A stretch of 64,000 nucleotides of DNA from Setoptus koraiensis (Eukaryota; Animalia; Arthropoda): positions 1,302,001-1,366,000 of the forward strand of contig CM106585.1 of the NCBI GenBank assembly GCA_048013815.1, given 5' to 3'. Below, piece after piece: positions 1 to 48,704 of this stretch. Each line of letters starts with the position of its first letter. Within the stretch, counting starts at the first letter, position 1. The notes below the pieces were generated by a model, which saw only the letters and a list, made by a program, of their open reading frames with translations, was not told where the DNA came from and ran no database searches. The position numbers and the translations under genes are program-made.

Positions 1-2360
1 GATTGTTGTTATTGATGGTCAGCCAGTAGTGGCGGCCACAAGAGCCACCAATGGTATGGTTTATGTGGTGAACAAATTTGTCAACATTACAAACCAATCA
101 CCTACAGTGATTGAGCTAATTAATCAAAGCAGAAACCTTTCTACTTTTAGCTCATATTTGCGACTATCTGGTTTCGATTCAGAACTCAAAAAAGGTGAGC
201 TGTGCTTCTTTATGCCAAACCGGCGCATATTAGTTGGATTTTAATTTTAAATATTAGCCAATATCTAACGACATCGCCCTGCTTTGCTAACTTGATACAA
301 ATTTAGATTCTGGACCGATAACAATATTGGCGCCCACTAATGATGCCTTTGATCAGCTATCTGACAAAGGCAAAGCATTGCTCAACTCGGACCCAGCTGC
401 TCTCCTTGGTAAGCTACTCTTTAGATGCAGATGATGAGTCAATAAACTGAGTCCTTCAATAATGCTAATCAATTACAATAATCAAACGATCTTGTCAACG
501 AAATAAATTTCAGATATCATAAAAGGACATATCGTTGATGGAGCTCAATTTGGTAAACTGATATCAATGAGAGTCCGATTGCCAACTCTAAACGCGGGCC
601 AATTTGTCACAGCCAAGAACATCAAACGTAAGTTGTTTTTTATTTTTACCTCATTCTCCCTCCATAATTACACTGTTTGTTGTGATCGAAATTTATTAAT
701 ATGCAAACCAAATAACCAAATATCGCTCTGTCATCGCTCTCACTAGCAAACGTTTATCTACTGGATGAACAAATGACAACCATCAAGTTGGTAGGTTCAT
801 CTGGAAATGGTGTTGTGAATTCCATTGATCGTATCATAGTTCCACGATGGCTGAGAAATTCATTCGAGTCATTGTCAAATAGAAATAATAGTTCATTTGT
901 TGGAGATCGCGAAATTGAAAACATTGACTCCAGTAGGATAGGTAGATTTGAGTCGGGTATCAATCAATTCAATCAGCCCATAATAAGAGAGCCCAGTGCC
1001 ATAGATACCATTACTAGTAGCATTAATACATCGGATGGTTTCGAGTCGACATCTAACACTTTTGGAAACAATACCAATCAAGGTGTCAGAGATACACCGA
1101 ACACAACGACGAGTATGTTTAGTGGGGCTGCTACACTTTCTGATGGGCTAGACATATTTGTCATGACAAATAATAATAGATCGAGCAACAATAACAATCG
1201 AACTAGTACCATCAGACATCCTTTGGACGCAACAACAACAACAACTAGCTGGAACAATAATTCAATGTCTAAAAATATGAGATTAATTGAAGAATTGTCA
1301 TCTATGATGTCGGCAAACAAATTTGTAAAATTGTTGCATAAGGCTAATTCGGCAAAATTTCTAAAACAAGCAACAAACTATGTTATATTGGTGCCCACTG
1401 ATCAGGCTATCGATAAATTGCCAAAACAAATAATACAGATGCTGGAAAGGAATAATCAAAAATTAGAGGATCTAGTCAACTATCACATTCTTGAAACAAC
1501 ATTTGAATATATAAATATGATACCAGATGGTCAGACATTGAATACAATCAATGATAAAGATATTGTTTTCAATTGGTATAGGAACAACACAATACTTACT
1601 GCTTCCGGTTCTGTTGTGTTGAGCGGTGTACAAGAGGATAATATAGCTTTGCTTTTAGTAGATCGTGTACTATATCCAACTCCTGGCGATATAATGGACA
1701 TAATATCCAAATCGCCAATACTAAGCAACTTAACTAGAATAGTACGAAATACGGGCCTAGAACAACAATTATCCAAATCTGGCCCATTTACATTATTTGC
1801 ACCGTCAGATTATGCATTTAGCAAATTATCGGCCAACGACAGAGAGTTCCTTAATCGCGACACTGATGTAGCTAGAAGTAAGTTTTATCTCTTCGATTGA
1901 TATTGTTATAATTGTTTGAACATAACATTTGCTAAATAACTAAACTAACTGCTGCTCTCATTTCGCTATATTTCGTCGACTATTTCAAGGATTTTTGTTG
2001 AAGCATCTGAGCCAGCCGACAGTGTTTACATCTGCGATAGCTTTAAGCAATGTAACCACAATAATTCAGGGAGGCCAGTCAGTCCCGAGATTGAGTATAA
2101 CAAATTCGCTGGGCGATGAATTATTGTTACGCCAAATGAACGGTATGTCCTACTGACTTATATAAAACTCAATCATCAATTATATCGTACATGAATTCTG
2201 CTCATGGTCTCATTCAAATACTAAGACACTATAACTGTATTTTTCATCTCAATATTCTTCTGTCACCACAGACTATTTCTCTGTCAACGATGTCAACTTT
2301 TCATACTCTGATGTCGCGGCGACCAATGGAGTGATTCATGTGATTGATGGAACCTTATAG
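1..2360 (+). CDS. Fasciclin (FAS1) domain protein, TGFBI/periostin/midline-fasciclin-like; 5'-partial multi-exon copy
   Basis: GT-AG exons <1-194, 307-408, 514-627, 747-1877, 1990-2142, 2272-2360 splice in frame. They give FAS1 H1 motifs (TILAPTNDAF, VILVPTDQAI, FTLFAPSDYAF) and H2 motifs (ATNGMVYVVN, ATNGVIHVID), ending at TAG 2358-2360. Track ORF 773-1900 is an internal exon. Confidence 0.9.
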
Positions 2361-3277: not shown

Positions 3278-4141
3278 ATGGAACAAACCAACGACAAAAA
3301 TGGAGATCAACTTGTACGAGTAGCGATGGCTGGCCAAATGGAGAAGGTTAAGTTCTACCTTGAAGAGGAAAATATTGATGTGGATTATACCGATAAACAT
3401 GGCGATACAGCACTGGACGGCGCTTCACTCGCTGGGCAAGTTGACACTGTCAATTACTTGATATCAAAGGGGGCTAATGTTAATGTTCGTTCGCTAGAAA
3501 AAGCAATCAGGGGTGGATCTGTTGAGATTGCAGAAATTCTCATTCAAAATGGGGCTGATCTTACAGAAAGCAGTAGAGCATCTCTGAATCTAGCTATAGA
3601 ATCTAATAGCCCTGGAATGATTAGTTTTGTTATGTCTAAGGGTTTCGACATAAACCAAAACGATCATAAGGGCATGACTCCCTTGGCATATGCCATGCAC
3701 ATGGCACGTTATGAAAGCATTAAGTTTTTGTTAGAGATTGGCGCAGACTATAAGAAGACTTCCTCGTACTACTTCGGAACGAGTTATGGGTTTTTACCTG
3801 TTCATCTTGGAGTTCACGGTTACTATGAAAGAGAAGCCATGAGATGTCTAGAGCTACTACTTAGGCATGTGGAGGAGAAGGAACGAAGACAGGGAATGAT
3901 TGACTATATAGATAACAATGATAATTCTAGGGGTGATACTGTTTTGCATCAAGCTTGCTCCTTTAAAAACTATGATGCGGTGAAGCTGCTGCTACAATGT
4001 GGTGCCGACCCACATATAAGAAATAGGGCGGGTAGAAAACCTCACCATTCTATTGAGTTCTCGAGATTATCGCTTCGTGATGAAGAGAGTGACTTTATGA
4101 GAACATTGTTCGAATCTGAAGGACACCATGCTCCATCGTAG
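3278..4141 (+). CDS. Ankyrin repeat protein, 287 aa, intronless
   Basis: ATG to TAG ORF with ANK motifs: GDTALDGASLAGQVDTVNYLISKGANVN, GMTPLAYAMHMARYESIKFLLEIGAD, GDTVLHQACSFKNYDAVKLLLQCGADPHIRN. Confidence 0.9.
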   Translation: MEQTNDKNGDQLVRVAMAGQMEKVKFYLEEENIDVDYTDKHGDTALDGASLAGQVDTVNYLISKGANVNVRSLEKAIRGGSVEIAEILIQNGADLTESSRASLNLAIESNSPGMISFVMSKGFDINQNDHKGMTPLAYAMHMARYESIKFLLEIGADYKKTSSYYFGTSYGFLPVHLGVHGYYEREAMRCLELLLRHVEEKERRQGMIDYIDNNDNSRGDTVLHQACSFKNYDAVKLLLQCGADPHIRNRAGRKPHHSIEFSRLSLRDEESDFMRTLFESEGHHAPS

Positions 4142-4246
4142 ATGCCGTATAGCATGCATTCACTGGTCAATCTGAGTTATTATTATTCTATTAAATTTAT
4201 TATATCCCTGACTTATGAGCCTACACAAACTGAGATATTTTCATCC

Positions 4247-4746
4247 NNNNNNNNNNNNNNNNNNNNNNNNNNNNNNNNNNNNNNNNNNNNNNNNNNNNNN
4301 NNNNNNNNNNNNNNNNNNNNNNNNNNNNNNNNNNNNNNNNNNNNNNNNNNNNNNNNNNNNNNNNNNNNNNNNNNNNNNNNNNNNNNNNNNNNNNNNNNNN
4401 NNNNNNNNNNNNNNNNNNNNNNNNNNNNNNNNNNNNNNNNNNNNNNNNNNNNNNNNNNNNNNNNNNNNNNNNNNNNNNNNNNNNNNNNNNNNNNNNNNNN
4501 NNNNNNNNNNNNNNNNNNNNNNNNNNNNNNNNNNNNNNNNNNNNNNNNNNNNNNNNNNNNNNNNNNNNNNNNNNNNNNNNNNNNNNNNNNNNNNNNNNNN
4601 NNNNNNNNNNNNNNNNNNNNNNNNNNNNNNNNNNNNNNNNNNNNNNNNNNNNNNNNNNNNNNNNNNNNNNNNNNNNNNNNNNNNNNNNNNNNNNNNNNNN
4701 NNNNNNNNNNNNNNNNNNNNNNNNNNNNNNNNNNNNNNNNNNNNNN
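4247..4746. other. Assembly gap (500 N)
   Basis: Run of exactly 500 N; the fixed size indicates a scaffolding placeholder. Confidence 1.
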
Positions 4747-5806
4747 TCTGATAAGATTACTCTGATCTTTGTAAGGTGTTATCACTCCAATGTCGTTCTT
4801 ATGAATACCCCGTGAAAGCAGAATATCAATCGTGGCTATAACGATTTCGACTTCGCCCTCGTTGATCCACGATGTCGATCGGGTTCTTGGGCTCTCATCT
4901 GAAGTGTGGCAATGAAAATAGATGGGCCTGTCGGGATTGGGGAACGGGCACATATCCTTGTTACCTATCCACTTTCTATCGCTCGCTTGAATACCGTTCC
5001 TAATCCTTCCTCCATTGAAGTGTTTGTTGGGAAATTTCGCTATCTCCGGGTGCATGCGGTACTGAACATTCAACAAGTTCGGCTCGAAACCAACATCTTT
5101 GAGTTTGCTATAAAAACTTTCTTTCATATAGGGTAGAAATTGATTGTCGTCGCCCACAAGTACAAACCTTCTAGGTCGATATTCCAGCAGTTTAAGAGCG
5201 TCTGGAACGCTGAATCGGCTGCAGTCATCAACAATCACAGAATCGAAGATACAAGGCAGACTGTATATTGACAATGAAAGAATATCATCGCAAGTACAAC
5301 AAATAACATCCGATTTGTCAAGAATTTCTCGCTCGCGAACACTCAGCTTATTCCGCAATACATGCAAGAGCCTATTAAAGTTATGTGACTGATATTTCTC
5401 CTCTTGTTTCTTCATGAACCGGTCGAGCAGCCATTCAGGACCGATTCTAACAACTCTGAGTTCGCCAGATTCGTGAATCTTTTCTGCTATATTATCGACG
5501 GTCTTGTTGTCTGCCGCACAAATAAGTATCTTGGATCTCCTAGAGAGTCTCGTCTGGAATAGTTTCAAGGCCAATAAGGTAGCAGTCACTGTCTTTCCCG
5601 TGCCCGTTGGTCCCATAATCAGACTGATTCTATTAGACAATGAATTGTTGATTGCATCCATTTGACATCTATCAAGCCGAATAAAATCACCAGCTAACGT
5701 CGTCACGTCTATTGCTACAGATTTCAGCAGGTTTTTCCTTTGTAAGTTCAGATAAACATTTTTTTTCTGAAGGAAGACTGAACGAAGCAAGTTGTCAGAC
5801 AAAATT
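4747..5806 (-). CDS. UPF1-like (SF1B) helicase core, 3' end lost in gap; probable downstream exon of the F-box gene
   Basis: Q-motif-like LDRCQMDAI, Walker A LIMGPTGTGKT, Ia ICAADNKTVDNI, II variant IVDDCS, III LVGDDNQ, IV LNVQYRMHPEIAKFPNKHF, then WINEGEVEIV and IGVITPYKDQ. No introns in this part. Confidence 0.85.
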
Positions 5807-6596
5807 CTTTGATGCCAAGAAAGAAAAAAGAAGCAATATAAAAAAGAAAAAAAAAATAGCGGAAAAAAAAAAGAAAATATAAAAAGGAATGAAAAAGAGA
5901 TAGGACCAAAAAAAGCAAGGGAAAAAAAAGAAAAAAAAGAACAAAAAAAAAAAAATAAAAAATAATGAAAAAAAAAAATAAGTAGGAAAAGAAAAAAAAA
6001 ATAGAAAAAAAAAAAAAAAGGGAAAAAAAAAAAAAAAAAAGAAAAGAAAAAAAAAAAAAAGAAAAAAAAAAATAAAAAAAAAAAAATAAAGAAAAAAAAT
6101 AAAGAAAATAATGAAAAAATAAAGAAAAAAAAGATAAGAACAAAAAAAAAAATAAAAAGAAAAAAGAAAAAAGAAAAAAAGCAAAAAAAAAAAAAAAATA
6201 ATAAAAAAGAAGTAAACAAAAAGCGGAAAGATAAGAAAATAAAAGATATAAAAAAAAAAAAGAAAAAAAAAGAAAAAAGGAAAAAAAAAAGAAAAAATAA
6301 AAAAAAAAAAAAAAAAGAAAAAGAATAAAGAAAAATAAAAAAAGAAAAGTAAAGCGAAAAAAAAGACGAAAAAAAGAAAAAAAATAAAAAGAATAAAAAA
6401 AGGCACAACCAAAAAAAGCAAAAGAAGAAACAAAAAAATAAAAAAAAAAAAAAAAAAAAGAAAAAAGAAAAAAAAAAAAAAAGAAAAAAAAAAAAATAAT
6501 GAAAAAAATAAAGAAAAGAAGGAAAAGAAAAAAAAAAATGAAGTAGAATAAAAAAAAAAAAGAAGAAAAAAAAAGAAAAAGAACAAAGAAAAAAAC
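5807..6596. repeat. A-rich low-complexity tract (T-rich on the coding strand); possible GT-AG intron or assembly artefact
   Basis: About 790 bp of degenerate poly(A) interrupted by single g/t/c. On the minus strand it starts GT (6596-6595) and ends with a polypyrimidine run then CAAAG (AG at 5808-5807). Confidence 0.85.
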
Positions 6597-7678
6597 ACGT
6601 TTTCTTTCCTCTTGTGCTTCTCTATAAGTGCAATATTAGTTAATTTGAACAAGCCTTTCATTGGCATATGTTCGAGCCTTTCGCAGAACCACCTTTTCCT
6701 AACATCCAACTGAATGAAACTCTTGACTTTGACATTAATGTACCCCCCTGAAAGAGAACCGGAGCGACTTGGTGCAACAAGCAGATGGTTTCTAGGGTAA
6801 GGGCTGATATTAACATCATGGAGCCATCCTTTTGCTGACCATATCCTTTCATCTAGTCTATTGAATTCAGACAATTCCAGATCGGTATGGCAATCGATAT
6901 CGTGGAGAAAATATCGACCGACTGCATCCAATTCTATTTTCGCAATCCAGTATTCATCACCTCTACTGTCGTAACAGCCCTCACTCCATTGTATTTCTGT
7001 GAAATCTTGCTCGCAGTATCTGAGTTCTTCTTCTAACGAGTGAGCATAAAACGGGATCTCATTCGCTAACAGAGCCTTTTCTTTCTTATATAAATCACCG
7101 CTAGCTGTCAAACTGAGAATCGAAAAATTCTGACCAATGTCAGATAAATGAGTGTATCTCCAATCAATAATAATTAATAAATTAGGCCAGCGACTCTTGA
7201 TGGTCTCGAGCTCCTCTTCATCATCTAATCTATTGTTTGCTATTATTAAAGTTGTCATTCTATTACATTTTTCCAATATTGATATGAGCTCAGATGGAGC
7301 TATCGACACCCCGGACACGTTCAAGATTTCCAATTCTGGACAATTGTCAGTTATTATGGAATGAGCGTTGTGTCCGATCCCCATGAGCGCACTCTCGTTT
7401 CTCCATTCATTTGTTAATTTAAGCGACTTGAGTTTTGACGCACTGGTCAGGATAGGTTCAAGAGTTTCAAGGTAGATAGAGTTTGCTTTGCAATCATCGA
7501 GAGATAAATTTTCAATTGTCTGATGTAATTGATACGATTCCAGTACCACACTCATTAATCGGTCCGACAACAGGCACAAATGATAGCGATCGTTGTGATC
7601 TCTGAGATGGTTGAGTATCATGAGCAAAACTTCGGCGGGCAACAGGTCAAGCCAGCACGCCGGTTCCTCTAACGCCAT
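6597..7678 (-). CDS. F-box + leucine-rich-repeat protein whose C-terminal half resembles the UPF1 stalk/1B region
   Basis: ATG 7678. F-box WLDLLPAEVLLMILNHL; LRR-like IENLSL, LKSLKL, CPELEILNVSG, CNRMTTLIIANN; then EIQWSEG...WIAKIEL...IWSAKGWLHDV, which aligns by eye with UPF1 VRWDLG...RIAYFTL...LWKGIGHVIKV. Confidence 0.75.
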
Positions 7679-8616: not shown

Positions 8617-9489
8617 ATGTCCAGTGGTGAGTTCCGCAGTCAGCTATTGTCGGCTGCAGTTCGTGGCCCACTAAGAAAGGTTAAGTTTTATATTGAAGAA
8701 GCAAGCATTGATGTGAATTATGTTGAGGATGGTAGCCTCACAGCACTGTCCATTGCTTCTTCTCGCGGACATGTTGATATTGTTAACTACTTGATATCAA
8801 AGGGAGCTAATATTGATTCTTGTCCGCTAGCAAGAGCGGTTGAAAAAGGACATGTGGAGATTGCAAAAATCCTCATCCAAAAAGGAGCTAAAACAGATTG
8901 TAAAGAAAAAGGTATCAATCTTATGAATCTAGCTACATACTCTAATAACCCTGAAATGATTAATTTTGTCATGTCTGTTTGTTTGGACATTGACCAATAC
9001 AACGATCTTGGTGAAACACCCCTGTCACATGCCATGATGTTTAGATGTTAGGAGAGCGTTAAGTTTTTGCTAGAGAACGGCGCCGACTATAAGAAGACTT
9101 CCTCGGACATATAGCGCAGGCATTATGGGTTTTTACCTTTTAATCACCCTCGTTATTACTTAGTAAGAGAAAGCTTGAGATGTCTAGAGCTACTACTAAA
9201 GCATGTGGAGGCAAAGGAAGGAAGACGAGGAATGATTGACTATATAAATAACAATGACAATCATTGGGGGACTACTGCTTTGCATACTGCCTGTGCAATC
9301 GGATGCTACCATGTGGTCAAGCTGTTGCTAGAATGTGGCGCTGACCCAAATATAAGAGATAAGAAGGGTCGCAAAGCTTACCATCTCATCGTAAGTTGGT
9401 GTCATATTAATGGAAGACGTATTGACGATCGCAAGCATATACAGAAATTGTTCGGAAAATTATTCGCCGACCGAGCCAGATTTTCGTGA
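8617..9489 (+). pseudogene. Ankyrin repeat pseudogene, paralogue of 3278-4141
   Basis: Colinear with the 287-aa gene (KVKFYIEE, YLISKGAN, RCLELLLKHVE, MIDYI.NND, KLLLECGADP). One reading frame with two premature TAG stops (9049-9051, where the paralogue has TAT, and 9112-9114). Confidence 0.85.
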
Positions 9490-9565
9490 AACTTTAGTTG
9501 TAGCCCCGGAAGGGCCCCATAGAAAATTTCCGATAGTCCGGTGGGGGGGGAGAGGTGGCAAGTGT

Positions 9566-9860
9566 CTACTTCTGGTTTACTGACATTCTTTCCAAAGCTT
9601 GCCTCAATCTTTCAAACCTTGTGAATGACGCTCTTTCTCGCTGTTGTTTCACTGCATCTCTAAGTGCATACATTATTGGCGACACTGAAGAGAAGATCTG
9701 ACAATTTTCATCTCTCATAGTGATGAATAATTGTATCTCTAGCATTTGATTGCGCATGCATGAACAACTGTACGACCATAAAGTACTCCTTATACGAAAT
9801 GTCCTTTCAAAATACTGCAGCAAGTGTACGAAAATAAAATGTACGTCGTTGATCAATTGT
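9566..9860 (-). mobile_element. Possible degenerate Mutator-like transposase C-terminal fragment
   Basis: LLQYFERTF...LWS...SPIMYALRDAVKQQ loosely resembles the YFxxTW...WS...P C-terminal pattern of MULE transposases. No catalytic motifs seen. Confidence 0.3.
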
Positions 9861-9999
9861 ATCCCGTCATGAGGCAGCATAAAATAAATATATTTAGTTA
9901 GTTGTGGCCGGTGTAGGATGATTAAATTGATGACTGAACCAACTGGGGAGTGTTGATTTTGAACGAGCAATTTGGCAATACGAGCCATTAATCGATTCG

Positions 10000-12900
10000 C
10001 TCATCGTCACCTTTGTCCGTCAATACGCTGTGTGTCAAACAATACTGCTAAACAAGGTCTTGGCGCTGATAAAGCGGCTGTTGTTGTTGCTGTGGTTGTT
10101 GTTGCATGGTCTGATGTGACAGGACGAAGCGACGTTGTCAGCGAGTTGTTATTGTTGTTCTCTTGTCTGTCTGGTTGCAAGCAACCGATTTATGCTTTGT
10201 CACATAATCGGATCACAATTGTACATGCCAGCCTGTCACACACACACACACACACGACAATTAAAGGACGAGTCGTCTGTTGCGTAACGCAACTAACTAG
10301 CAACTACAATAATGACACATGAGCAGCGATAAACAAGAAAACAACAACAGTGGCAACAATAAACTTGCTACATCACCGATACACACGAAACTGATGATTG
10401 TCGTCATCCTCGTTGTCGGTGCTGCTGCTGCTGCTGTCATCATGTCGAGTTTGTAGCACGGTCTAACGGTGCCAATTACAGGTAAACACGTAAACAGTTG
10501 CACTTGTCGTGGTCGACACTTGTGTTCCCGTTATTATCATTATTGTCACTGTTATTGTTGTTGTTGTTGGCGTTGCTGTGATGGCAGCCGTTGTGTTGTT
10601 GCTGTCACACTGGTTGCAGTCTACAACTAGTTGCATTCAACGATTGGCCCGTTGCAATTGTCAAAATGGGCTTGCCAGCTAGTTTGCCTGACACTGTAGA
10701 GTATAGACACTGGGGATTCTGTTCAGAGTGTTGCACTTTCAAGCAAAGTTAACGTTATCTAATGGTCTCTGACGACCATTATAACAATGTAAGCGAAAAA
10801 CAGTGTTGTTTGTGTATAAACAGCAGGCCGTGTTTCTAACGAACTGCAGTAACAACAACGACAACAACAACAACAATAACAGCCAAGAGAGTCAGTCAAG
10901 TGACACAAACGATACGGCTGAAATTAATTACGTAATGGGCCCAGATTTTAAAACATACACACACATTAGCTGTCAGTGACTAACGAGCTTGGCATCGTTC
11001 ATGTGTCGTGTTTCTGTTGTTGCTGTTGTTGATGTTGACCGTCAGACGGCGCAACACGAGCAAACTAGCAGTTGTTGTTGTTGTTGTTGTTGTTGCTGCA
11101 TAAGACAACCAGTGCAACTAGGCCAGCAACGATTAGTCACCATCAGTAGACGGCGATGTTGCGTAACCAGAGTGCGCGCCAAGGCCTCGGTGCACGTCGT
11201 TCATTGACCCCGCGTAAAGTTAGTTAAGTTAGTCAGCGATTTGGATGGGCGCGTGATTGGCCAATATTGTTTAGCCTGTGCATAGTGCAACTGTGGCTGC
11301 TCTAATTATCCATACCATTACATGTATATACATACGACTAATCATTGTTATCCGTTATGTCTAACTAATTCTGTCAAGTAAACTAACTAATGTTGTCCGC
11401 TTTGTGAGCTATGGCGTTGCTATGCGTCGCATTGTTGTTGCGCAAGCTGTTGTGCGTCTCACCAAAACACTATTGGCAATAGCAACAAGTTGCCGCCAGC
11501 AACTGTTTATAACTGTTTTATGTGAATACGATGCTACGCGACAATTGTTACGTAACCCGCTCTCGCTCTCGTCCAATGCGTCTGTCAGTGGCTACTAATA
11601 GTGGCAATCGGGACACGATTGCAACTATTAGTACTGCTGGACTGCTGGTGCCAGTGCAACCATCTACCAGTGTGTGTGTGTGTGTGTGTGCGTGTGTGTG
11701 TGCGCAAGGCGTACAGCAGAGACACGGACAATGAGAGCCAAATTACCGGCATTACATAATAGTGGTCGCTCGTGATTGTGCCGCGGCAACACAACACAAC
11801 AATAACGACAACCGCAAGTGTCAGCTTGCGCCATCTCCATTGTTGTTGTCGTTGTCGTTGTCGCTGTCGCTGCGATTGGGCCGCATCATTATTATTACCA
11901 TTGCCGTCATGCTGCCACTGTCTTGCCAACTCGTCCGATTCGAACAACGACACTGTATGTAGGGCGGCCGCTAGCGCACCGGTGGTTGTTGCAGTTGTTG
12001 GCAACACTCACCTGTAATAGTAGTAACAACAACAACGCTGCCAGGTGCATGATGAAATAAAAAGAGAGCAACACGGAGAGAGTTATTCTCCAACTCTCAT
12101 TCTAATATTCTATATGTCACACACAATACTGTGTGTGTGTGTGTGTATTAGATGCGAGAATCGTCGTTGACACTTGTTGTTACTTCCGTGATTTGTCCTA
12201 CACACACACACACACACACACTCGCAATTGAGCACAGGTGCAGCCAGTGCAAGTCGAGTACGTTACGTAACGGCATTACGGTGACAATTGTCGGGCCGAC
12301 TCGCTCGCTGGCTTGCTGGCTCGTTTTCTGGCTGGCTGGCTGGCTCACTGGCTCGTTGACTGTCTGGCTGAGTGATTTCGCAGCTTTTTTCTTCTCTTTT
12401 TAGCATTATTTTCTTTCATTCACACCAAATCTAGACGCATGTGCAATTCAGATTTCGCTCTAATTTTTCCAGTGGCAGCAACAAATACACTTTTTGTCAC
12501 TGTTGCGCTACACATTATATAACTGTATAACGTCTTGCTATGTTGGCTCGTTCGAAATTTTCGCATCGATGTTATAAGCACAAGTGTCACAAACAACAAT
12601 CGAATCACGTCACACAAAATCGCATCAGATCTATGTTGGCAGGCCGGAAAAGTCGGCTCAGGGGGCGCCAAAATGCAATTCATCGGCAAGGGTCGGTGTT
12701 AGTCACTGGCAACCACTTGCTGTCACTTGTTCGTACATAGGGGCACATGTATGATGATTTTGTTTGTTTGTCGTTTGGCGACACTGCAAAGCCAAACAAA
12801 ATGTCTACCTAAAGTCAGGCCGCTGTTGTCGTTGTTGTTGTTGTTGTTGTCGTGGTTGTTTGCGAGCAAACACGCCAAATTCACTCATGTGTCATTAAAT

Positions 12901-15103
12901 TGTTTGCTCCAATTAATAAAACCACTTTTGTCGTATCATATAAGCGCAATCACACAAACAATCGCTGTCTTGTCGTGTCTCCGACGACAACAACAACAGC
13001 AACAACAACGACAACCCTTGTCCAACAGCGTTATGCGTTGTAAAGTTTGCGTTTTGTGCGACGCGCCTAGGTGGGACGAAATTGAACACAATTACCATGG
13101 AAACCAGCAGTATTATCGTCATCATTTTAATGCATGTATAGTTAGCTAACGGTAACGTTGAGCGCATGCATTTGATTTTGATCTGTCTTGTTAGTGACAA
13201 AAACAACAAATTTCGACTCTTTCTTGTGTCACTGTCAAGCGGGCTCTGCATACAACAAGTGGACAATATAGACAATTTCGGTAAACGGCACCAAAAAGAA
13301 CCAAAGAGAAAAACAGACACCAGTCGATGGAGTAGAAGTGATTTTTTGTTTGTTGTTGCTGCAGTTTCATTTTTATCTCTGATTTTATGCCACTGCGACT
13401 AACGAAAATATGTCTGACACACACATGAACAAACTATGGCCCGTTATTCATTCTGCATGAGTGATCGCGATCCTTGTTGGGGTGTCCAGTTACGTAACAA
13501 ACATCCACTGGCAAGCGTTGTGCTCGAGCAACAAGTGTTGCCCGCTATTCAAGATGGCCGCGCACCGATGTGACCGAGGTGATCAGACAACAATTAGCTT
13601 CATATTGGTCGTACTTTAGCTAATTTACTATTGCTAATTAGTTTCGATAATTAGTCTTGTGCAGTCTGGTGTGTGTGCGGCACAACTAGCCAACTGTGCT
13701 AACTGTGTGCTTATGCATCAGTAATTAACATAGTTACTTTCATGCGGCAGCTAACATAACGGTAATTGGTTGTGATTGTCAAAAGAATTGATTGGATTGT
13801 GCCCATATGTCACATGCTAATATATGGGACAATATATAAATATACATTGCGCCATCGTACAATATATTTGCATGTGCTCATGCATAACATTGCGTTTACG
13901 CCAAAAAAAGTGTGCCAAATAGACTATCAATAATTAGTGGTGCAGCCAGACAGTCATTGGGCTTGGCCGGCACGCTATGGATGCCGCCGGTATTGGTGAC
14001 AGTTGAGTAATTCGTGAATAAAAACAAGGTGAACTATGGCAGCTATCACCGATAGTTTTCAGTGCCCACCAATGCAATCAATGTCTCATGAAAATTGATG
14101 CGGCCAGGTGGCGCCACTCGGACTTGCAAGTGTGTGTGGTCAATGAGGGCGCCCACGAGTATGTTTCATTTGGCGCGCATTTCGACACTACCTGCGGCAA
14201 CTAAAGCAACAGCAGATAATGAATGCAACAGGTGAATCGTTTGTGTTGCGCAAGCGTGTTTGCTTGGAATGCTTGTGTGCGCAAAGCAAGCAAGCGGCAT
14301 CACCTGTACAAGTAAGCAGCGTCGTCAGGTTGACGGCGACGATGGCGACGATGACGACGATGACGATGACGATGATGATGACGATGATGATGGTGGGTTT
14401 ATGGTGGTCGAGACGAAACGAGCGAACGAACGAACCGAAGAACGAACCGAAGAACGAACCGAAGAACGAACCGAAGAACGAACTAAAGAACGAGCGGCAA
14501 GCCAGCGAATCGGTATGCAGGTCATCAGCTGATAGGCACGCCAGTGGAAACCGTGAAAAAAAGCAAACCTCTTTCTTACGTAACCACGACGCTTTTATTT
14601 AGAGTTGTAGCTGTTGCCTGTTGTACCAGATACGTTGTTGTGTTTGTTGTTGCAGTTGCTGTTGCAGTTGCTGTAGCAGTTGTTGCCGTTGTTGTTCGGA
14701 CGTTCTGACTTGTTGAGTTTGGTCGGTTGTGCTCCATGAATTTGTGCTGCATAAGCAACAGACAGATAAGCAAACAAGACGCTGTGTTTGTCCGACTGGC
14801 CGCCTGTCTCTTGACGGGACTTCTCTCTCGCTCTTTTCGTTAGCCTACTTCTTTTTGGCTTGCCAAGACCAGCTCACCTGAGTGTGTGTGTGTGTGTGTG
14901 TGTGTTCGTGGTGGCTACAACGACCCCGAACGCACAGTTGCACAGTGTGCTGCAGCGACGGCCATCTCGCTGCAAATGTAGTTGCTGCTGTTGTTGTTTG
15001 TCTGGCAATATATAGGCCGCGCCCGTAGCAGTGTGTGTGTGCGTGTGCTTGCAACCTGTCGACTTGCAACTCGTCTGACTCGTCATCGTCGCCATAGTCG
15101 CCG

Positions 15104-15163
<60 letters not shown>

Positions 15164-16559
15164 CGACTATCTAAACAACAATCGGGCCAGCAAACACACA
15201 CACACACACAACAGCGACAACGATTATTTGGCAAGCTAGCGCTGTTACGTAACTAGCAACTAGTGGCTAGCTAAGCTAATAACTAGTAACTCGTAGCTCG
15301 TAACTTCTTTCGCGACACAACCATTCACCTGTGTGAGTGTTTGTGTGCGTTAGTCTTTGTTGGTGCAAAGCCAACAACAGCAACAACAACTGCACAAGTA
15401 ACTGATTGGCCAGGCCAGCAGTGTTAGACCGACAATGTTAAACGATGGCGATATCTAAAAATAGCACAAATCGCGCTTTTTGATGCGTGGTCACCTGCTG
15501 CTTCTGGCGCTGCCGTCGCCGCCGAACACCACACAAGCTCACAGCTAATGGCACATCTCGCACACTTGATCATTATCTCTCTTGTTAGGCATATCTTAAT
15601 TACAATTACGTAACAGCTATGACGCCGTCTGGCCGGGCTTGTTTGTCGTCTCGCCACTCTGAACTTACTAACAAGCGTGTCTGCCGTTATGGCTACAAGG
15701 TGGCGCTGCCTTGCACGAGCTCTATCGTCTGGCCTCATTTCATTTGTCATGGCGGCAATACTTATCGCCAGTTATTATAATATTGTTGGCGATTATTGGC
15801 CAATCTCAATGTCAAAGTTATTTGCAGATATTGTGATATTGTTGCCAGTTTGTTCGTTTGTTTGTGGCACGTTGAGAGATGGGCGCCAACTGGTGGCCAC
15901 AATTGACCGCCGAAATAAAATCACGCGGTGCTCACGCGCTCACTGGCTACGGTGCCTTCCTGTCGGTCAGTGTTTTAGAGAGTCGTTTTAGATTGGACCG
16001 CTTGGGGCGCGCGCATGTTCGCTCCATGAGTCTGGTCGACTAGATCGATTAGATTGCTCGCTGCACCAAAACAATCATCGGTTTATCTAGAGGCAACAAC
16101 AACAGCAACAACAACAGCGGCATGGTGTGCCAATTGTGTCTATTATAGCCAGCACAATTGCTGTCGTGCCGACGCGGCCAAAATAATACGTAGCGTCGCT
16201 GTTGCGCAATCTCGCGGGCTGGCTCACTCACTTGCTATAACTGCATGCAAACAATGGCAAACAAACAAACGGACAGACGAACAAACAAACTTAGCCAAGA
16301 AATGATGAATGGGCACACACAGATACGATCAATGTGGCCGGCGTACACGTTGGCATGAGGCAAGGATATGCAAATGCGATTGCCATTGCTTGTTGATTGT
16401 TTGCGATGATGCAACAAATGCTACTGATGCCTCGCGTTGCGCTAACATTGTTATAGTGGCTTACAGTATAGTGACCATAAGTGCACTATAGTTACAGGTT
16501 GCTGTGGCGCGAGTGGTCAGCTGACAAGTGCAATTTGAGGTGAGCTTTGTGAGGCCGGA

Positions 16560-16624
<65 letters not shown>

Positions 16625-19600
16625 CACCTATAGGTTGCATGTTTGTGTGCTCATGGCAGGGCCACTCGAAGCTCATTGGCCAGACTCATTGGTCACCGTT
16701 GTCGCTGTTGAATGGCCGGTGTGAGCGTAGCACAGGTAAGCAACAGGTGAGCGGTCAGTGAGGACAACAACAAACGGCAAGTAAGTTAAGCAAACAACAT
16801 TGGCCAAGCACAAACACATCGCTATTGGCTCGTTCATTGGCTGTGTGTGTTCGTTAATTGTATTGGTACAATACACATGCCTGTTGCAAGCTGACCGAAA
16901 ATGCTGCTGCTGTGACTTGAAATGTTGCGTAACCATTGCCAACAGTCAAGTGCACTCGCTCGATTATTGCGCAACCGCTCAGCTGACCTGCGACTCAGCT
17001 GACCACTGGTCACTCTGGGAGTGAGTGTGTCCTGCGGCAAGTGGAGGCGACCAGTGGTGCCATAGGGAGCACTATGCATACTAGACCAGATATGCCCAAT
17101 GATTAATGGTTGCTGCACGCTCCATCGGCCACTTCTACCCCTACCCGTACCCCAACGCATGAGCACAGTGTTATCTGACACTGTATTTGGGCATCAACAT
17201 TGGGTACTGTAAGCGGCAAGAGATTAACACTGACGGCCAAAACTGTGCGTAAGGCTGTGCATCAGTTTGAGGCCCATAGTTCTCAATGAACGACACACAC
17301 ACACACACTCTAAATGAATGGATAATTGGGTATGGGCGTGGCGGCAGTAGAGGCCAAAGGCCGCACATGGCGTCTACACACACACACACACAGTTCACAC
17401 AAGCCAACTTCCGGTTTACTATTGCTATCCATAGTGTGTGGCTATAAAACACACTTGTTATAATTATTATTTGAACTGTTACTGTAGTTGCCATGGTAAC
17501 TGGTATGGTAACTATGGTGCTCATTCAACTGAATTCATGCTTCTAGTGAATATATTCATATATAAATATATGGCTGGTGTGTTTTATACGCTCAGTGTAT
17601 CAACATGATGTGTGTGTATGCATGCACAGGTGAATATGGCGGTGAAAATTGATTAATTGTTGCCGCGAATTCATAAAAGGACACACACAAACGAGAAGAT
17701 AAATTGCAAACGAGAACGCGTGCCGCTAGAGTGGCCCTTGTCCATTGACTGTATTATACGGTACGTGTATTATTGAGTATGTTGTGTTGGTTTGGCCAGT
17801 TTGAGCAGTGGCGGCAGTTTGGGCGGTTTGGCCAGTTTGGCCGGTTGGTAATTTAACGACACCGTCTAGACTCGATGCACTGGATGATGTGGATAAAATT
17901 AGCTGCGATATTTACCTGTGGCTGCGCGTAGTTGTTTGTTTGGTTGGTTGGAAAGCGTACACGTTTGTTGTATTAGTGAGCTGATAGCGAACGATAAACG
18001 CTGCCGGCAACGTGGCCGATACACGTACACGCACACGCACTTTTTGTGTGCGTGTGTGTGTGTGTGTGGCTGGCGCTGGCAGCAGCAACTTGTTGCATCG
18101 TAAAGTGACGCTAGCATTGTCGGCGCGTTGCTATGCACCGACAGCGGCACCATTCCAATCTATAACAACCTATGAGAGCCAATTCAGCCAAACGAACACA
18201 CACGAGATATGGAGGGGATAGGTAAATTTTTGTGCATTGGAGTGGCCAGTAGAGTGGCCCTCATCTATCAACTGCTGGCAGCGTGTCAAGTGTGTGTGTG
18301 TGTGTGTACGTAGCAACAACAGGTGAATAGGCATAATCAAACAACAGCAACAGGTATCTGTAGGCGACTTTATTTATGTATGGCTTTTTATTTGATTACT
18401 ATTATGGCTGGCGGGCGAGCACGGCAAGCATGACAACGAGCCAAAATACGAGCAGCAGTGCATGCATACGAGTTGCGCCAGCAGCGGCATATAGCAACAA
18501 CAGGTCACAACAGGTAACTTGCGCCTGTTGCACTGGCCGGCCAGTCAGTCGGTGAGCCCGCCAGCCAGCCGTTGCAGTTGCAGTTTCTGTTGCAGTTGGT
18601 GTTGCAGTTGCTGTTGGTGTTGCGTAACCTTGAACGCTTCGCTTCGGCGAAATATCTGCCTCTTTTTGTGCACTTATGCGAGCCAAGCTTGTGTGCGTGT
18701 GTGTGCGTTTACAAATCATCTTCTAGCCCAGGAATCACGCTCCAGCTCTGACTTGGCTGCGTCTCGTTCGGCTAGCAACTAGCTCCTTTTCTTGGCTGCT
18801 TATATTACGCTCGTTGCCCAACAGATCGCCGGCTGATTGCAGGTGAACTCGCACACAGCAACTACGCGCAAACTTAACCTGTCCTGCATCGGGCATCGGG
18901 CAGCAAGCAACAGACAGCGAGCAACAGCCAACCAGCCAAAGGCAACTGTGACCTGCGTTGGTGCTCACAATCTCATTAGATTGCATGCGATTCCGAGATG
19001 CCGAGATCGGCCGACGAGATTGCGCCACTGGCATTTGAAATTCGAACGCGCGCGCCGGTGTCAATGGCGCTGCCGAGTAAACGAGCCGCAGCAAAGGTAT
19101 TTATGAGCAGACGGCGCACAAGGAAAAGAATTTTGTTGCGTCGTGGCACATACGCCAGCCTCCTTCTCCACTGGCTGGCCGCCTCCTCGGCCGGCCAGCC
19201 AAAGCCAGCCGAAGCCGAACGAAGCCAAACGAAGCCCTACGAAGCCTTACGCAGCCAGTGGACGGGCTCCGATCGGTGCAAGCGACAATTGTGTCACACG
19301 CAGAGGCACAATTATCAATGCGCGATGTGGATGCCGAAATGCAGGCGCACGTCGCTGCCATCTAAGCGACGGCCAAAAATGCCAGTCGCTTATTCTTTTC
19401 CTGTGGCTTCTTCACTCGCTGCCGGCCACTCAATGGCACAATCACTGGCCGGAATTCGCTCACGGTGCGTGCTGGCGACTCTTGTGTGTCTGCAAAGCTG
19501 ATTCGTCGCACTCGTTGCGAGTGTCTGGAGCGTTCGAGCCGTTCGACAGCTTCGAAATGCTGCAAGTGGCAGCACGCGCTGCTGGGCAGTGTCGTCATTG

Positions 19601-26062: not shown

Positions 26063-26562
26063 NNNNNNNNNNNNNNNNNNNNNNNNNNNNNNNNNNNNNN
26101 NNNNNNNNNNNNNNNNNNNNNNNNNNNNNNNNNNNNNNNNNNNNNNNNNNNNNNNNNNNNNNNNNNNNNNNNNNNNNNNNNNNNNNNNNNNNNNNNNNNN
26201 NNNNNNNNNNNNNNNNNNNNNNNNNNNNNNNNNNNNNNNNNNNNNNNNNNNNNNNNNNNNNNNNNNNNNNNNNNNNNNNNNNNNNNNNNNNNNNNNNNNN
26301 NNNNNNNNNNNNNNNNNNNNNNNNNNNNNNNNNNNNNNNNNNNNNNNNNNNNNNNNNNNNNNNNNNNNNNNNNNNNNNNNNNNNNNNNNNNNNNNNNNNN
26401 NNNNNNNNNNNNNNNNNNNNNNNNNNNNNNNNNNNNNNNNNNNNNNNNNNNNNNNNNNNNNNNNNNNNNNNNNNNNNNNNNNNNNNNNNNNNNNNNNNNN
26501 NNNNNNNNNNNNNNNNNNNNNNNNNNNNNNNNNNNNNNNNNNNNNNNNNNNNNNNNNNNNNN
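26063..26562. other. Assembly gap (500 N)
   Basis: Run of exactly 500 N. Confidence 1.
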
Positions 26563-26841
26563 CTTCATGGCTTTCGATCCAAAACTGTTTCAACAAGACT
26601 ATCTTTCGCAATTTCTGCATAAATTAACATCTATTGATAATGAAATCAATTCTTGGTTGCTTGATATCTGTACATAAACGAGGTTTATTATTTTGTTGCT
26701 GGATGAATGGGCTACTATACTACAAAGAATAAAACAAAATAGTTACATAATTGATCGAATAACAATCAAACATATAACAATAATTATACATTTACAACAT
26801 TTATCTTGCTGGATAATAGAGTGTGCCGATTATGACAGTAT

Positions 26842-29800
26842 CTATAAGGTTCCATCAATCACATGAATCACTCCATTGGTCGCCGCGACATCAGAGTATG
26901 AAAAGTTGACATCGTTGACAGAGAAATAGTCTGTGGTGACAGAAGAATATTGAGATGAAAAATACAGTTATAGTGTCTTAGTATTTGAATGAGACCATGA
27001 GCAGAATTCATGTACGATATAATTGATGATTGAGTTTTATATAAGTCAGTAGGACATACCGTTCATTTGGCGTAACAATAATTCATCGCCCAGCGAATTT
27101 GTTATACTCAATCTCGGGACTGACTGGCCTCCCTGAATTATTGTGGTTACATTGCTTAAAGCTATCGCAGATGTAAACACTGTCGGCTGGCTCAGATGCT
27201 TCAACAAAAATCCTTGAAATAGTCGACGAAATATAGCGAAATGAGAGCAGCAGTTAGTTTAGTTATTTAGCAAATGTTATGTTCAAACAATTATAACAAT
27301 ATCAATCGAAGAGATAAAACTTACTTCTAGCTACATCAGTGTCGCGATTAAGGAACTCTCTGTCGTTGGCCGATAATTTGCTAAATGCATAATCTGACGG
27401 TGCAAATAATGTAAATGGGCCAGATTTGGATAATTGTTGTTCTAGGCCTGTATTTCGTACTATTCTAGTTAAGTTGCTTAGTATTGGCGATTTGGATATT
27501 ATGTCCATTATATCGCCAGGAGTTGGATATAGTACACGATCTACTAAAAGCAAAGCTATATTATCCTCTTGTACACCGCTCAACACAACAGAACCGGAAG
27601 CAGTAAGTATTGTGTTGTTCCTATACCAATTGAAAACAATATCTTTATCATTGATTGTATTCAATGTCTGACCATCTGGTATCATATTTATATATTCAAA
27701 TGTTGTTTCAAGAATGTGATAGTTGACTAGATCCTCTAATTTTTGATTATTCCTTTCCAGCATTTGTATTATTTGTTTTGGCAATTTATCGATAGCCTGA
27801 TCAGTGGGCACCAATATAACATAGTTTGTTGCTTGTTTTAGAAATTTTGCCGAATTAGCCTTATGCAACAATTTTACAAATTTGTTTGCCGACATCATAG
27901 ATGACAATTCTTCAATTAATCTCATATTTTTAGACATTGAATTATTATTCCAGCTAAATGTTGTTGTTGTTGCGTCCAAAGGATGTCTGATGGTACTAGT
28001 TCGATTGTTATTGTTGCTCGATCTATTATTATTTGTCATGACAAATATGTCTGGCCCATCAGAAAGTGTAGCAGCCCCACTAAACATACTCGTCGTTGTG
28101 GTCGGTGTATCTCTGACACCTTGATTGGTATAGTTTCCAAAAGTGTTAGATGTCGACTCGAAACCATCCGATGTATTAATGCTACTAGTAATGGTATCTA
28201 TGGCACTGGGCTCTCTTATTATGGGCTGATTGAATTGATTGATACCCGACTCAAATCTACCTATCCTACTGGAGTCAATGTTTTCAATTTCGCGATCTCC
28301 AACAAATGAACTATTATTTCTATTTGACAATGACTCGAATGAATTTCTCAGCCATCGTGGAACTATGATACGATCAATGGAATTCACAACACCATTTCCA
28401 GATGAACCTACCAACTTGATGGTTGTCATTTGTTCATCCAGTAGATAAACGTTTGCTAGTGAGAGCGATGACAGAGCGATATTTGGTTATTTGGTTTGCA
28501 TATTAATAAATTTCGATCACAACAAACAGTGTAATTATGGAGGGAGAATGAGGTAAAAATAAAAAACAACTTACGTTTGATGTTCTTGGCTGTGACAAAT
28601 TGGCCCGCGTTTAGAGTTGGCAATCGGACTCTCATTGATATCAGTTTACCAAATTGAGCTCCATCAACGATATGTCCTTTTATGATATCTGAAATTTATT
28701 TCGTTGACAAGATCGTTTGATTATTGTAATTGATTAGCATTATTGAAGGATTCAGTTTATTGACTCATCATCTGCATCTAAAGGGTAGCTTACCAAGGAG
28801 AGCAGCTGGGTCCGAGTTGAGCAATGCTTTGCCTTTGTCAGATAGCTGATCAAAGGCATCATTAGTGGGCGCCAATATTGTTATCGGTCCAGAATCTAAA
28901 TTTGTATCAAGTTAGCAAAGCAGGGCGATGTCGTTAGATATTGGATAATATTTAAAATTAAAATACAACTAATATGCGCCGGTTTGGCATAAAGAAGCAC
29001 AACTCACCTTTTTTGAGTTCTGAATCGAAACCAGATAGTCGCAAATATGAGCTAAAAGTAGAAAGGTTTCTGCTCTGATTAATTAGCTCAATCACTGTAG
29101 GTGATTGGTTCGTAATGTTGACAAATTTGTTCACCACATAAACCATACCATTGGTGGCTCTTGTGGCCGCCACTACTGGCTGACCATCAATAACAACAAT
29201 CTTTTTGTCTGGTATACTAGACAATATTAGTTTTCTTTTTGACATACTAGGTATAATTGTGTCCTTCAATAAATCTTTGGGCGTCATTAGACTGAAGGAC
29301 AGATGATCTAAAAGTAATTGTCTTGCTTGTTGCGAGGAACAATCAATATTATATGGCTGATTAAAAGAATAGACACTCTGTTGGCTTCTATCATCATTGT
29401 TAGTGCTGGTGAGATCAACGCCCGAAATGATGCCACAAACAGTTTCCATGGATTAATCAAGTGTAGAGACGCGGACTTCATTGTGCATGAGATAGATCTG
29501 GAGGGAAATTCAGCACATTTAACTAATACAAAGATCCCTGACGACGAAAAACTTGAGGTGCAAGACAGTCCAAAACTTGACAGCATTTTAAATCAAGAAC
29601 AAATCGATTCTATTGATGCGGTCATGAAAGCTATTCCTTACCTGAAATTAATTGAAAGACGACCAATATGAATAAAGAAGCCAGTACAGAATTGCATCAG
29701 CGATCAGTAGCTAATTTGAAGAATAGATAGCACAACCGTTGTCCGATCACCTAATCGGATAGAACGATGAATACGAACAATATATTTTGATTAAACGCTA

Positions 29801-47443: not shown

Positions 47444-48704
47444 GAGCTCGTGAGATGGGCGATTTTTTGTAAGCTATACCAGCAGGCTCGAGGCTCGAGC
47501 ACGCTGAACGGCGCGCGGCTGAAGGCGCAATGAGGCTTCGCTTCAGATCAAGTGATCGCTGGCAGTGGCAGCAGAGCTAGCATGTATTCTCTGTCTGGCT
47601 GTGGCTCGCTGCTGCTGAGCTGGAGCTGAGTATAGGCAATGGTTCTCGTGTTTGCTGTCTCGTGGTGCTCTCTTGCTCGCTCTCTCTCTCTCGCTCTCGC
47701 GCTCTCTCGCATTGTATTCGTCGCTATCAGCATCAATTTATCAAGCGATACGCACGTATATGCCACACATACGCACCATTGGCTCACACACACTAATGGC
47801 AACAATAATAATTAACAAATAAAATTCGACAGCAACCAGCTCAATTATCCGGATAGAAAATCATCATGAAAATAAAATATTGACCATGATTTTTGTGCAG
47901 CAAGAGAAGCTCACGATACACAAGCCAATGTTTGGGGCCGACCACTATTGCAGTCATTGGATAACGTTATATCAGGAGGACACAGTTTGAGATTTATATT
48001 AATAAATTAATATTAATTCCAATCGTTGTCACAGGAAGGGATTCGTTGCAAATTGACATCGTCCACACGTCGTCATTATCTCACATTATTATTATTATTA
48101 TCATTATTAGCATCATTATTAGTATCATTCGCTTTAATATTATTTATTGGTTGGTTACTATGTGGCTAGCAAATTGCAGCTTTGATTCTCTCTAGGTGAG
48201 TAGTTCAATATGACAATATCATAGCTCAAATTTTACACAATTACATAATTGTCGATCTAGTTAAGGACTTCAATCTAGTCGATATTAGATTAGTTGATTT
48301 AGATGCTGCTGGCAATCATGTTAATTGTGCTGTATATTGGCGACCAAGTTCACGTGTTTATAATTTATATAAATCAACGACCGAGAGTGATAATTGTGAG
48401 AGATGCAATTTTGAATCTGCTCATCTCATACACATTTTAAACTAACACAACAAATGTTATCTTATCCCGATTATCCCATGTTATATTCCGTTGTTATCCC
48501 GATTATTATGGGGCCCCATGTTTAATTTCAATTTAAAGCATCAGCAGACAGGGAACACAGGACATGGTAATCAATTTCCACTGTAAAACTCATTATACCG
48601 ATATTACTGAATATTAGTTATCAATATTAGTTATCCAATATTTAAATTGGACTAGTCATTGTTTATTATTATCGATTGACATTTATCATTAATTGAACAA
48701 CAAC

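Follow-up and report, generated by a model that had tools for sequence, protein, structure and literature searches.

A candidate F-box/leucine-rich repeat and UPF1-type helicase fusion gene, interrupted by a poly-A/T tract, in Setoptus koraiensis

A 64,000-nucleotide stretch of the Setoptus koraiensis genome (GenBank assembly GCA_048013815.1, contig CM106585.1, positions 1,302,001 to 1,366,000 of the forward strand; hereafter the window) carries on its minus strand an open reading frame (ORF) for an F-box/leucine-rich repeat (LRR) protein, a degenerate poly-A/T tract, and then a second ORF for a UPF1-like helicase that runs into an assembly gap. The question raised by this locus is whether the two ORFs are parts of one gene, and if so what the tract between them represents. 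The reading preferred here, to which a probability of about 0.75 is assigned, is that there is one gene, that it belongs to a real family of F-box/LRR-helicase fusions, and that the tract is secondary. The features of the locus, numbered from the first base of the window, are as follows.

7678 to 6599, minus strand: F-box/LRR ORF of 360 codons, from the ATG at 7678 to the last codon at 6599, with the F-box-like start LLPAEVLLMILNHL
7523..7654, minus strand: F-box, residues 9-52 of the first ORF, with LLPAEV at 7645-7628
7163..7510, minus strand: leucine-rich repeats, residues about 57-172, from weak Pfam LRR matches and a structural model
6599..7081, minus strand: middle region, residues 200-360, candidate UPF1 stalk and 1B barrel
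5807..6596, minus strand: degenerate poly-T tract (poly-A on the plus strand), 790 bp, breaking the reading frame
5806..5817, minus strand: codons W-H-Q-R, in frame with the helicase and ahead of the proposed start of exon 2, from tblastn with the relatives
5131..5676, minus strand: helicase RecA1 domain/AAA_11, from Pfam (AAA_11, 1.9e-29) and residue-wise alignment to UPF1 (2xzo)
5613-5590 and 5529-5488, minus strand: Walker A (GPTGTGKT) and motif Ia of RecA1
5238-5212 and 5160-5131, minus strand: motif II of RecA1 (VIVDDCSRF; DD, not DE) and motif III (LVGDDNQFLP)
4747..5124, minus strand: start of RecA2/AAA_12 (Pfam AAA_12, 2e-24, profile positions 2-126 of 195), cut by the gap
5067-5029 and 4782-4762, minus strand: motif IV of RecA2 (VQYRMHPEIAKFP) and the start of motif V (ITPYKDQ)
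4247..4746: assembly gap of 500 N, hiding the end of RecA2 (end of motif V, motif VI) and the stop codon

The first ORF ends at 6599 with ...KHKRKEN (NIALIEKHKRKEN), and the minus strand picks up again at 5805, in a different frame, with ILSDNLLRSVFL...LDRCQMDAI...GPTGTGKT, continuing for 353 codons up to the gap, where the last readable residues are ITPYKDQSNLIR. This layout of two ORFs, tract and resumption at LDRCQMDAI...GPTGTGKT was exactly that described in the first-pass annotation, which had also proposed an in-frame join on removal of 6596-5807. Recalculation gave the same outcome, namely the join KEN-V-ILSDN and 360 + 1 + 353 = 714 codons ahead of the gap (4247-4746). On the far side of the gap, the 105 bases up to the adjacent ankyrin gene (4142-4246) run into stops early on in each of the three minus-strand frames.

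Four relatives (P0001, P0003, P0004 and P0005) were identified when the first half was searched exhaustively with HMMER against 1.84 billion representatives; they are single ORFs of 670-723 amino acids (aa) with N-termini that fit residues 9-176. Each was found to carry an F-box and AAA_11 in one unbroken ORF. The four are 36-52% identical to one another, indicating a paralogous family in the organism of Logan run SRR33593474 (contigs L001 to L004), and one of the contigs also carries a septin, Rer1 and a hydrolase, suggesting that the source is eukaryotic. A word-based homologue search with the F-box half gave no matches, and a search with a profile built on the four relatives recovered P0001 and P0004 only and no further members.

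The relatives are colinear with both halves of the window gene and read across the site of the tract without a break, with 20-25 continuous codons where the window has the tract. At the junction the relatives have ...NIALQ...EQR-ILSDGF..., and the window has ...NIALIEKHKRKEN / tract / WHQR-ILSDNLL; in P0004 the sequence is ...FRLVNIALQVALESTLENPGRPHLLDEQR-ILSDGFIRDLLL, for which the window counterpart is ...FKLTNIALIEKHKRKEN / tract / WHQR-ILSDNLLRSVFL. In a maximum-likelihood tree of RecA1, a branch supported at 100/100 separated the window gene and the four relatives from 16 UPF1 sequences, and the window gene was sister to the four relatives. Strings such as LFQTR..SKILICAADN..KIHE..LRVV, which are common to the window and the relatives, are in line with this grouping, and comparison of the family RecA1 with that of UPF1 using hhalign gave a probability of 99.4%. 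As the relatives are colinear across the junction and group with the window gene in RecA1, the F-box/LRR-helicase fusion appears to be real, to have arisen once and to be older than the window copy. The combination predicted in the first-pass annotation from the window alone, an F-box/LRR head on a UPF1-type superfamily 1B (SF1B) core with no CH domain in a single gene, is thus supported by four unbroken colinear relatives and by the RecA1 grouping. Of the F-box with AAA_11/AAA_12 architecture, which that annotation had suggested seeking in related genomes, the F-box with AAA_11 is present in all four relatives, and AAA_12 was not found in them.

Walker A and motif II are gone from each of the four relatives, which end right after RecA1, and no AAA_12 was found downstream on their contigs. 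The relatives carry two extra LRR-like units that the window copy is without. Because Walker A and RecA2 are retained in the window copy, where motifs Ia, III and IV are also intact, it is likely to be the less derived form.

The second half was examined against domain, structure and sequence databases. In addition to the AAA_11 and AAA_12 matches listed above, the Pfam scan returned the UvrD-helicase profile at only 4.8e-5, over residues 48-126 (the P-loop part). UPF1 was the best solved relative (4e-38), with Sen1, IGHMBP2, DNA2 and ZNFX1 far lower, and the top database matches were true UPF1 orthologues with 30-34% identity. Only true UPF1 and UPF1-like proteins were recovered in the homologue search with this half, none with an F-box Pfam. 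Walker A, motifs Ia, III and IV and the start of motif V align to UPF1 (GPTGTGKT, ILICAADN, LVGDDNQ, VQYRMHP). Part of the segment that follows motif III in UPF1 is absent from the window helicase, and the alignment stops at position 510 of the 623-residue UPF1 chain, so that about 110 residues of RecA2, motif VI included, are missing. True UPF1 database matches carry PF09416 and PF18141; the Pfam scan of both halves of the window gene found no CH/UPF1_Zn_bind (PF09416) domain and no zinc-finger family. With no CH domain and a separate branch in the tree, the window gene is not a UPF1 orthologue. Three of the top helicase matches that lack the CH/1B Pfams (P0022, P0023 and P0037) were considered as further relatives, but they group among ordinary UPF1 sequences in the tree and have nothing in common with the F-box half.

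In the head of the protein, the F-box pattern LP..E..L..I..L was found in the window sequence, and the aligned stretch of P0001, P0004 and P0005 clears the Pfam F-box cut-off with 26-33 bits. The Pfam matches to LRRs are weak (LRR_NXF1-5 at 1.1e-5, LRR_At5g56370 and LRR_4). An AlphaFold2 (AF2) model of residues 1-170 had a predicted local distance difference test (pLDDT) score of 65-85, with alternating strand and helix in the LRR part. Its best solved match was Skp2 of the Skp1-Skp2 complex (1fs2_A, E 4.3e-6), followed by FBXL17, FBXL2 and the LRRs of NXF1, and the language-model neighbours of the first half were F-box/LRR clusters throughout. A three-helix F-box fold followed by an LRR substrate-binding domain was therefore recovered both in the AF2 model and in the structure matches.

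The region between the head and RecA1 was compared with the stalk and 1B barrel of UPF1. The alignment of the middle region of the window gene with that of the relatives was weak, with a score of 19.8 that was reached in none of 80 shuffles, and so was that of the relatives alone with the UPF1 stalk/1B profile (19.6, reached in 1 of 80). A family profile of all five sequences scored 31.9 (P 2.8e-4; 0 of 200 shuffles, for which the null was 12.7 +/- 2.3 with a maximum of 24.5), over 107 colinear columns spanning the stalk, the barrel and the MQ.AL helix. P0004 was modelled with AF2 from an alignment in which UPF1 rows covered RecA1 only, leaving the middle unforced. In the model, residues 294-466 fold into a long helix followed by six strands and then helices (pLDDT 75-87 for residues 310-440), and the top solved matches were UPF1 chains (model 315-723 against UPF1 319-697). 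A search of the ESM Atlas with residues 196-360 gave a best score of only 0.61 and was uninformative, and hhalign of the whole family against the whole of UPF1 aligned RecA1 alone. From the profile and the model, it is probable that a UPF1 stalk/1B region follows the head and precedes RecA1.

A number of observations weigh against the reading of one gene from a real fusion family, and these are gathered here. All four relatives come from a single run, and the 100/100 grouping could be inflated, as the window gene and the relatives are all long branches. The F-box of the window gene is itself below threshold (E 8.7e-4 for the Pfam F-box-like profile; 19.5 bits, where the cut-off is 24.3). In the middle region, window residues 200-360 alone scored 12.3 against the UPF1 stalk/1B profile, which was equalled by 45 of 80 shuffles; the AF2 model of the window protein has a pLDDT of about 30 beyond residue 173; and the UPF1 matches to the P0004 model that take in the 1B part have a root-mean-square deviation of about 21 A, indicating either that the domains are oriented differently or that the barrel match is loose. 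The alignment to the UPF1 stalk and 1B barrel that had been made by eye from the window is consequently plausible, on the strength of the family profile and the P0004 model, but only in part confirmed, as the window sequence on its own gives no signal in profile comparison and a model of low confidence. An active helicase is made less certain by motif II, where VIVDDCSRF has D at the position of the catalytic glutamate expected from UPF1 (ILIDESTQA), and by the location of the end of motif V and motif VI within the gap. Finally, the mechanism outlined below, in which the protein would be an adaptor of a Skp1-Cul1-F-box (SCF) ubiquitin ligase, is considered by itself to have about an even chance of being correct, with Skp1 binding and RNA binding as predicted properties.

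The tract that separates the two halves (6596-5807) contains 630 A, 92 G, 45 T and 23 C on the plus strand (80% A), arranged as A runs of up to 20 that are interrupted mostly by single G or T, and has no counterpart elsewhere in the 64-kb window. As the relatives are unbroken at this site and the acceptor proposed for an intron is inside conserved coding sequence, the tract is likely to be a secondary intrusion into a once-continuous ORF, and a conventional intron is less likely than either a real insertion or expansion or a low-complexity stretch that was poorly resolved in a gapped assembly. A 6-base direct repeat (AAAGAA) that flanks the tract was considered as a target-site duplication and dropped, as deletion between the copies leaves the frame broken.

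A real insertion or expansion would mean that the gene was broken recently and is now either a young pseudogene or a gene for an F-box/LRR/1B protein with a poly-Phe tail reaching to 5795. This is an acceptable explanation, though held only tentatively and at less than even odds. The two halves are in different frames, reading through the tract yields 264 mostly Phe codons and then a stop at 5795, and decaying duplicates are found nearby (the ankyrin copy at 8617-9400, with two in-frame stops). However, a helicase ORF of 353 codons with its visible motifs intact would be short-lived without selection, and the break must then be very recent.

If the tract is instead an assembly artefact or a badly resolved low-complexity stretch, the true locus would be continuous, with about 3-12 codons between KEN and WHQR. 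The tract resembles a noisy homopolymer, and its flanks are neighbouring positions of one gene, about 3-12 codons apart to judge from the relatives. Placeholder gaps of exactly 500 N also occur at three places in the window, one of them 1,060 bases from the tract, and an inverted duplicate of 2.6 kb (99.4% identical) ends at another gap. On the other hand, no indel noise was seen in other window ORFs (two fasciclin copies of 375 aa and an ORF of 1,947 aa), suggesting that the assembly is not generally unpolished, and an artefact is regarded as possible but rather doubtful.

The third explanation is that 6596-5807 is a genuine GT-AG intron and that the mRNA encodes a continuous protein with KEN-V-ILSDN. 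Removal restores the frame, the first AG on the sense strand is preceded by an extreme polypyrimidine stretch, as a 3' splice site requires, and both flanking ORFs (360 and 353 codons) are stop-free, as for a gene in use. Both halves were also found in the same runs at similar shares, but these runs are of unstated kind (RNA or DNA) and hence are not evidence of expression. Against an intron, the candidate donor (AACGT/GTTTTT) and acceptor (CAAAG/A) are both weak and fit poorly to the usual metazoan splice consensus. The 5' edge offers two GT dinucleotides that overlap and the 3' edge a single AG; with a 1 in 3 chance of an in-frame result for each pair, an in-frame GT-AG pair has roughly even odds of arising by chance. 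The proposed acceptor AG (5808-5807) falls within the R codon of WHQR, and tblastn alignments with P0001 and P0004 begin at 5811 and that with P0005 at 5808, taking in Q and R beyond the acceptor. R precedes (I/V)(L/F)(S/T)D in all four relatives, and Q precedes this R in two of them, so that splicing at the proposed acceptor would delete a residue conserved in every relative. As all four relatives are unbroken at the junction, and as several further window genes consist of one ORF each (soluble guanylate cyclase of 816 aa, ELP6 and fasciclin), an intron is considered somewhat unlikely.

The last alternative is that the F-box/LRR protein has a gene to itself and that the helicase, truncated at its N-terminus, has its own transcript. 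This would fit the separation of two stop-free ORFs by the tract and the internal Met of the helicase ORF just ahead of Walker A (CQMDAI), but is highly improbable given the colinear continuous relatives, the probable membership of the middle region upstream of the tract in the helicase core, and the loss of the conserved ILSD...LL helix that a start at the first Met would entail.

The surroundings of this locus in the window were also recorded. Ankyrin-repeat paralogues lie on either side of the F-box/helicase gene, at 3278-4141 (+) and 8617-9400 (+); the first is an intact ORF of 287 aa, and the second, which is 56% identical to it and has two in-frame stops, is a pseudogene. The three gaps of exactly 500 N are about 20 kb apart (4247-4746, 26063-26562 and 44680-45179), one truncating the helicase gene and another the end of the 1,947-aa ORF at 38834-44677. 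The copies of the inverted 2.6-kb duplicate (1-2639 and 26563-29201, 99.4% identity) hold a 375-aa fasciclin gene at 773-1900 (+) and 27302-28429 (-), and as one begins where the window does and the other immediately next to a 500-N gap, the pair reflects either a segmental duplication or a haplotype copy in the wrong place. The region 9400-19000 has no ORF of at least 150 aa, a raised G+C (up to 0.51) and many CA/TG microsatellites, and looks non-coding. A TruD/Pus7-like pseudouridine synthase at 29318-30815 (+) is present as two ORF pieces, the main ORF covering profile positions 44-207 of 412; its C-terminal half was not seen before the next gene, and it is either only a piece of a gene or a gene whose introns were not recognised. 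Soluble guanylate cyclase (HNOB-HNOBA-cyclase, 816 aa, 48693-51143, +) and ELP6 (60807-61733, +) each occupy one uninterrupted ORF, and several genes in the window seem to be intronless, which is unusual for an animal genome.

If the locus is one gene from a fusion family, an origin can be proposed in which an FBXL-type head of F-box and LRRs took the place of the CH zinc-knuckle in a UPF1-derived SF1B helicase. The family would be lineage-specific, the fusion being common to the window gene and to the ORF family of one other organism, in which the helicase part would have decayed to a dead RecA1-only stub. In such a protein the F-box is predicted to dock on Skp1/Cul1, and the LRRs with the UPF1-derived helicase module would be the part that chooses substrates. 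The module might bind single-stranded RNA, or a protein that is RNA-bound or a UPF1 partner, and so bring the target to the ligase. Given the DD of motif II, the module may be an ATP-dependent RNA clamp rather than a motor. The lack of ATP binding and of RecA2 in the four relatives suggests that any function common to the family needs the 1B/RecA1 surface as a scaffold and not unwinding. The specific proposal that the window copy is a working ancestral SCF adaptor, in which an ATP-binding, RNA-clamping UPF1-type helicase chooses substrates, is judged clearly unlikely. As speculation, the expansion and the decayed copies resemble those of fast-evolving F-box families and would fit genetic conflict.

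Targets for SCF-dependent degradation are chosen by F-box proteins, and RNAs for decay are chosen by UPF1-type helicases. The presence of both in one polypeptide would physically link RNA surveillance to protein ubiquitination, so that, if the proposal is correct, RNA engagement would direct ubiquitination, for example at aberrant, viral or transposon ribonucleoproteins, and the dead half-helicase relatives would be later decoy or scaffold derivatives. The natural series from the near-complete helicase of the window copy to the dead RecA1-only stub could show which helicase part such an adaptor needs, with the value of this locus limited by the tract and the gap, which compromise the integrity of the window copy. 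The CH domain of UPF1, which is RING-like, is together with ZNFX1 the nearest precedent; the fusion would be an F-box counterpart of both.

Comparison with known systems places the gene between several of them. UPF1 (Nam7) ranks first for the helicase half among both solved structures and database sequences, sharing motifs I, Ia, III and IV and probably the stalk/1B region ahead of RecA1. It differs in having the CH (UPF1_Zn_bind) domain where the window gene has the F-box and LRRs, and DE where the window gene has DD in motif II, and the window helicase is on a long branch separate from all sampled UPF1 orthologues. The head resembles FBXL-type proteins (Skp2, FBXL2 and FBXL17) in the N-terminal F-box followed directly by LRRs, with Skp2 the top structural match, but with about 4-5 repeats its run of LRRs is short, and the helicase core comes next. 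To our knowledge no FBXL with a helicase core after the LRRs has been described, and none was found in a literature search.

FBH1 (FBXO18) has a UvrD-type core, belonging to superfamily 1A (SF1A). Like the window gene, it combines an F-box and an SF1 helicase in one polypeptide, being a 3'-5' DNA translocase/helicase that acts as an SCF ligase. The core in the window is UPF1-type SF1B, as AAA_11 and AAA_12 match at 1e-24 to 1e-29 and UvrD-helicase at 4.8e-5, and the window fusion is unrelated to FBH1 and independent of it. The difference in helicase type drawn in the first-pass annotation is in keeping with the 3'-5' polarity described for FBH1, and its assignment of FBH1 to UvrD-type SF1A is textbook knowledge.

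The closest functional precedent for an RNA helicase combined with ubiquitination is ZNFX1, a UPF1-like SF1 RNA helicase with its own E3 ubiquitin ligase activity (PMC13710534; 10.1101/2025.10.14.682297; 10.1101/2025.09.05.674436). Whereas ZNFX1 is described there as having this activity itself, the window protein would recruit a ligase through its F-box; the window gene is not ZNFX1, as NFX1-type fingers are not found in it, and the similarity is weak (1.4e-6) and limited to RecA1.

Full-text literature searches for an F-box with UPF1-like or AAA_12 domains turned up no description of the fusion architecture, in agreement with the first-pass annotation, to which it was also unfamiliar. The nearest relatives are the dead half-UPF1 proteins (P0001, P0003, P0004 and P0005), which have a homologous head, middle and RecA1, are colinear with the window gene and form one tree group with it, but from which Walker A, motif II and RecA2 are gone, whereas the window gene keeps Walker A and RecA2. 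Together, these genes are apparently a small, undescribed family in which an F-box adaptor carries a UPF1-type helicase as its cargo domain.

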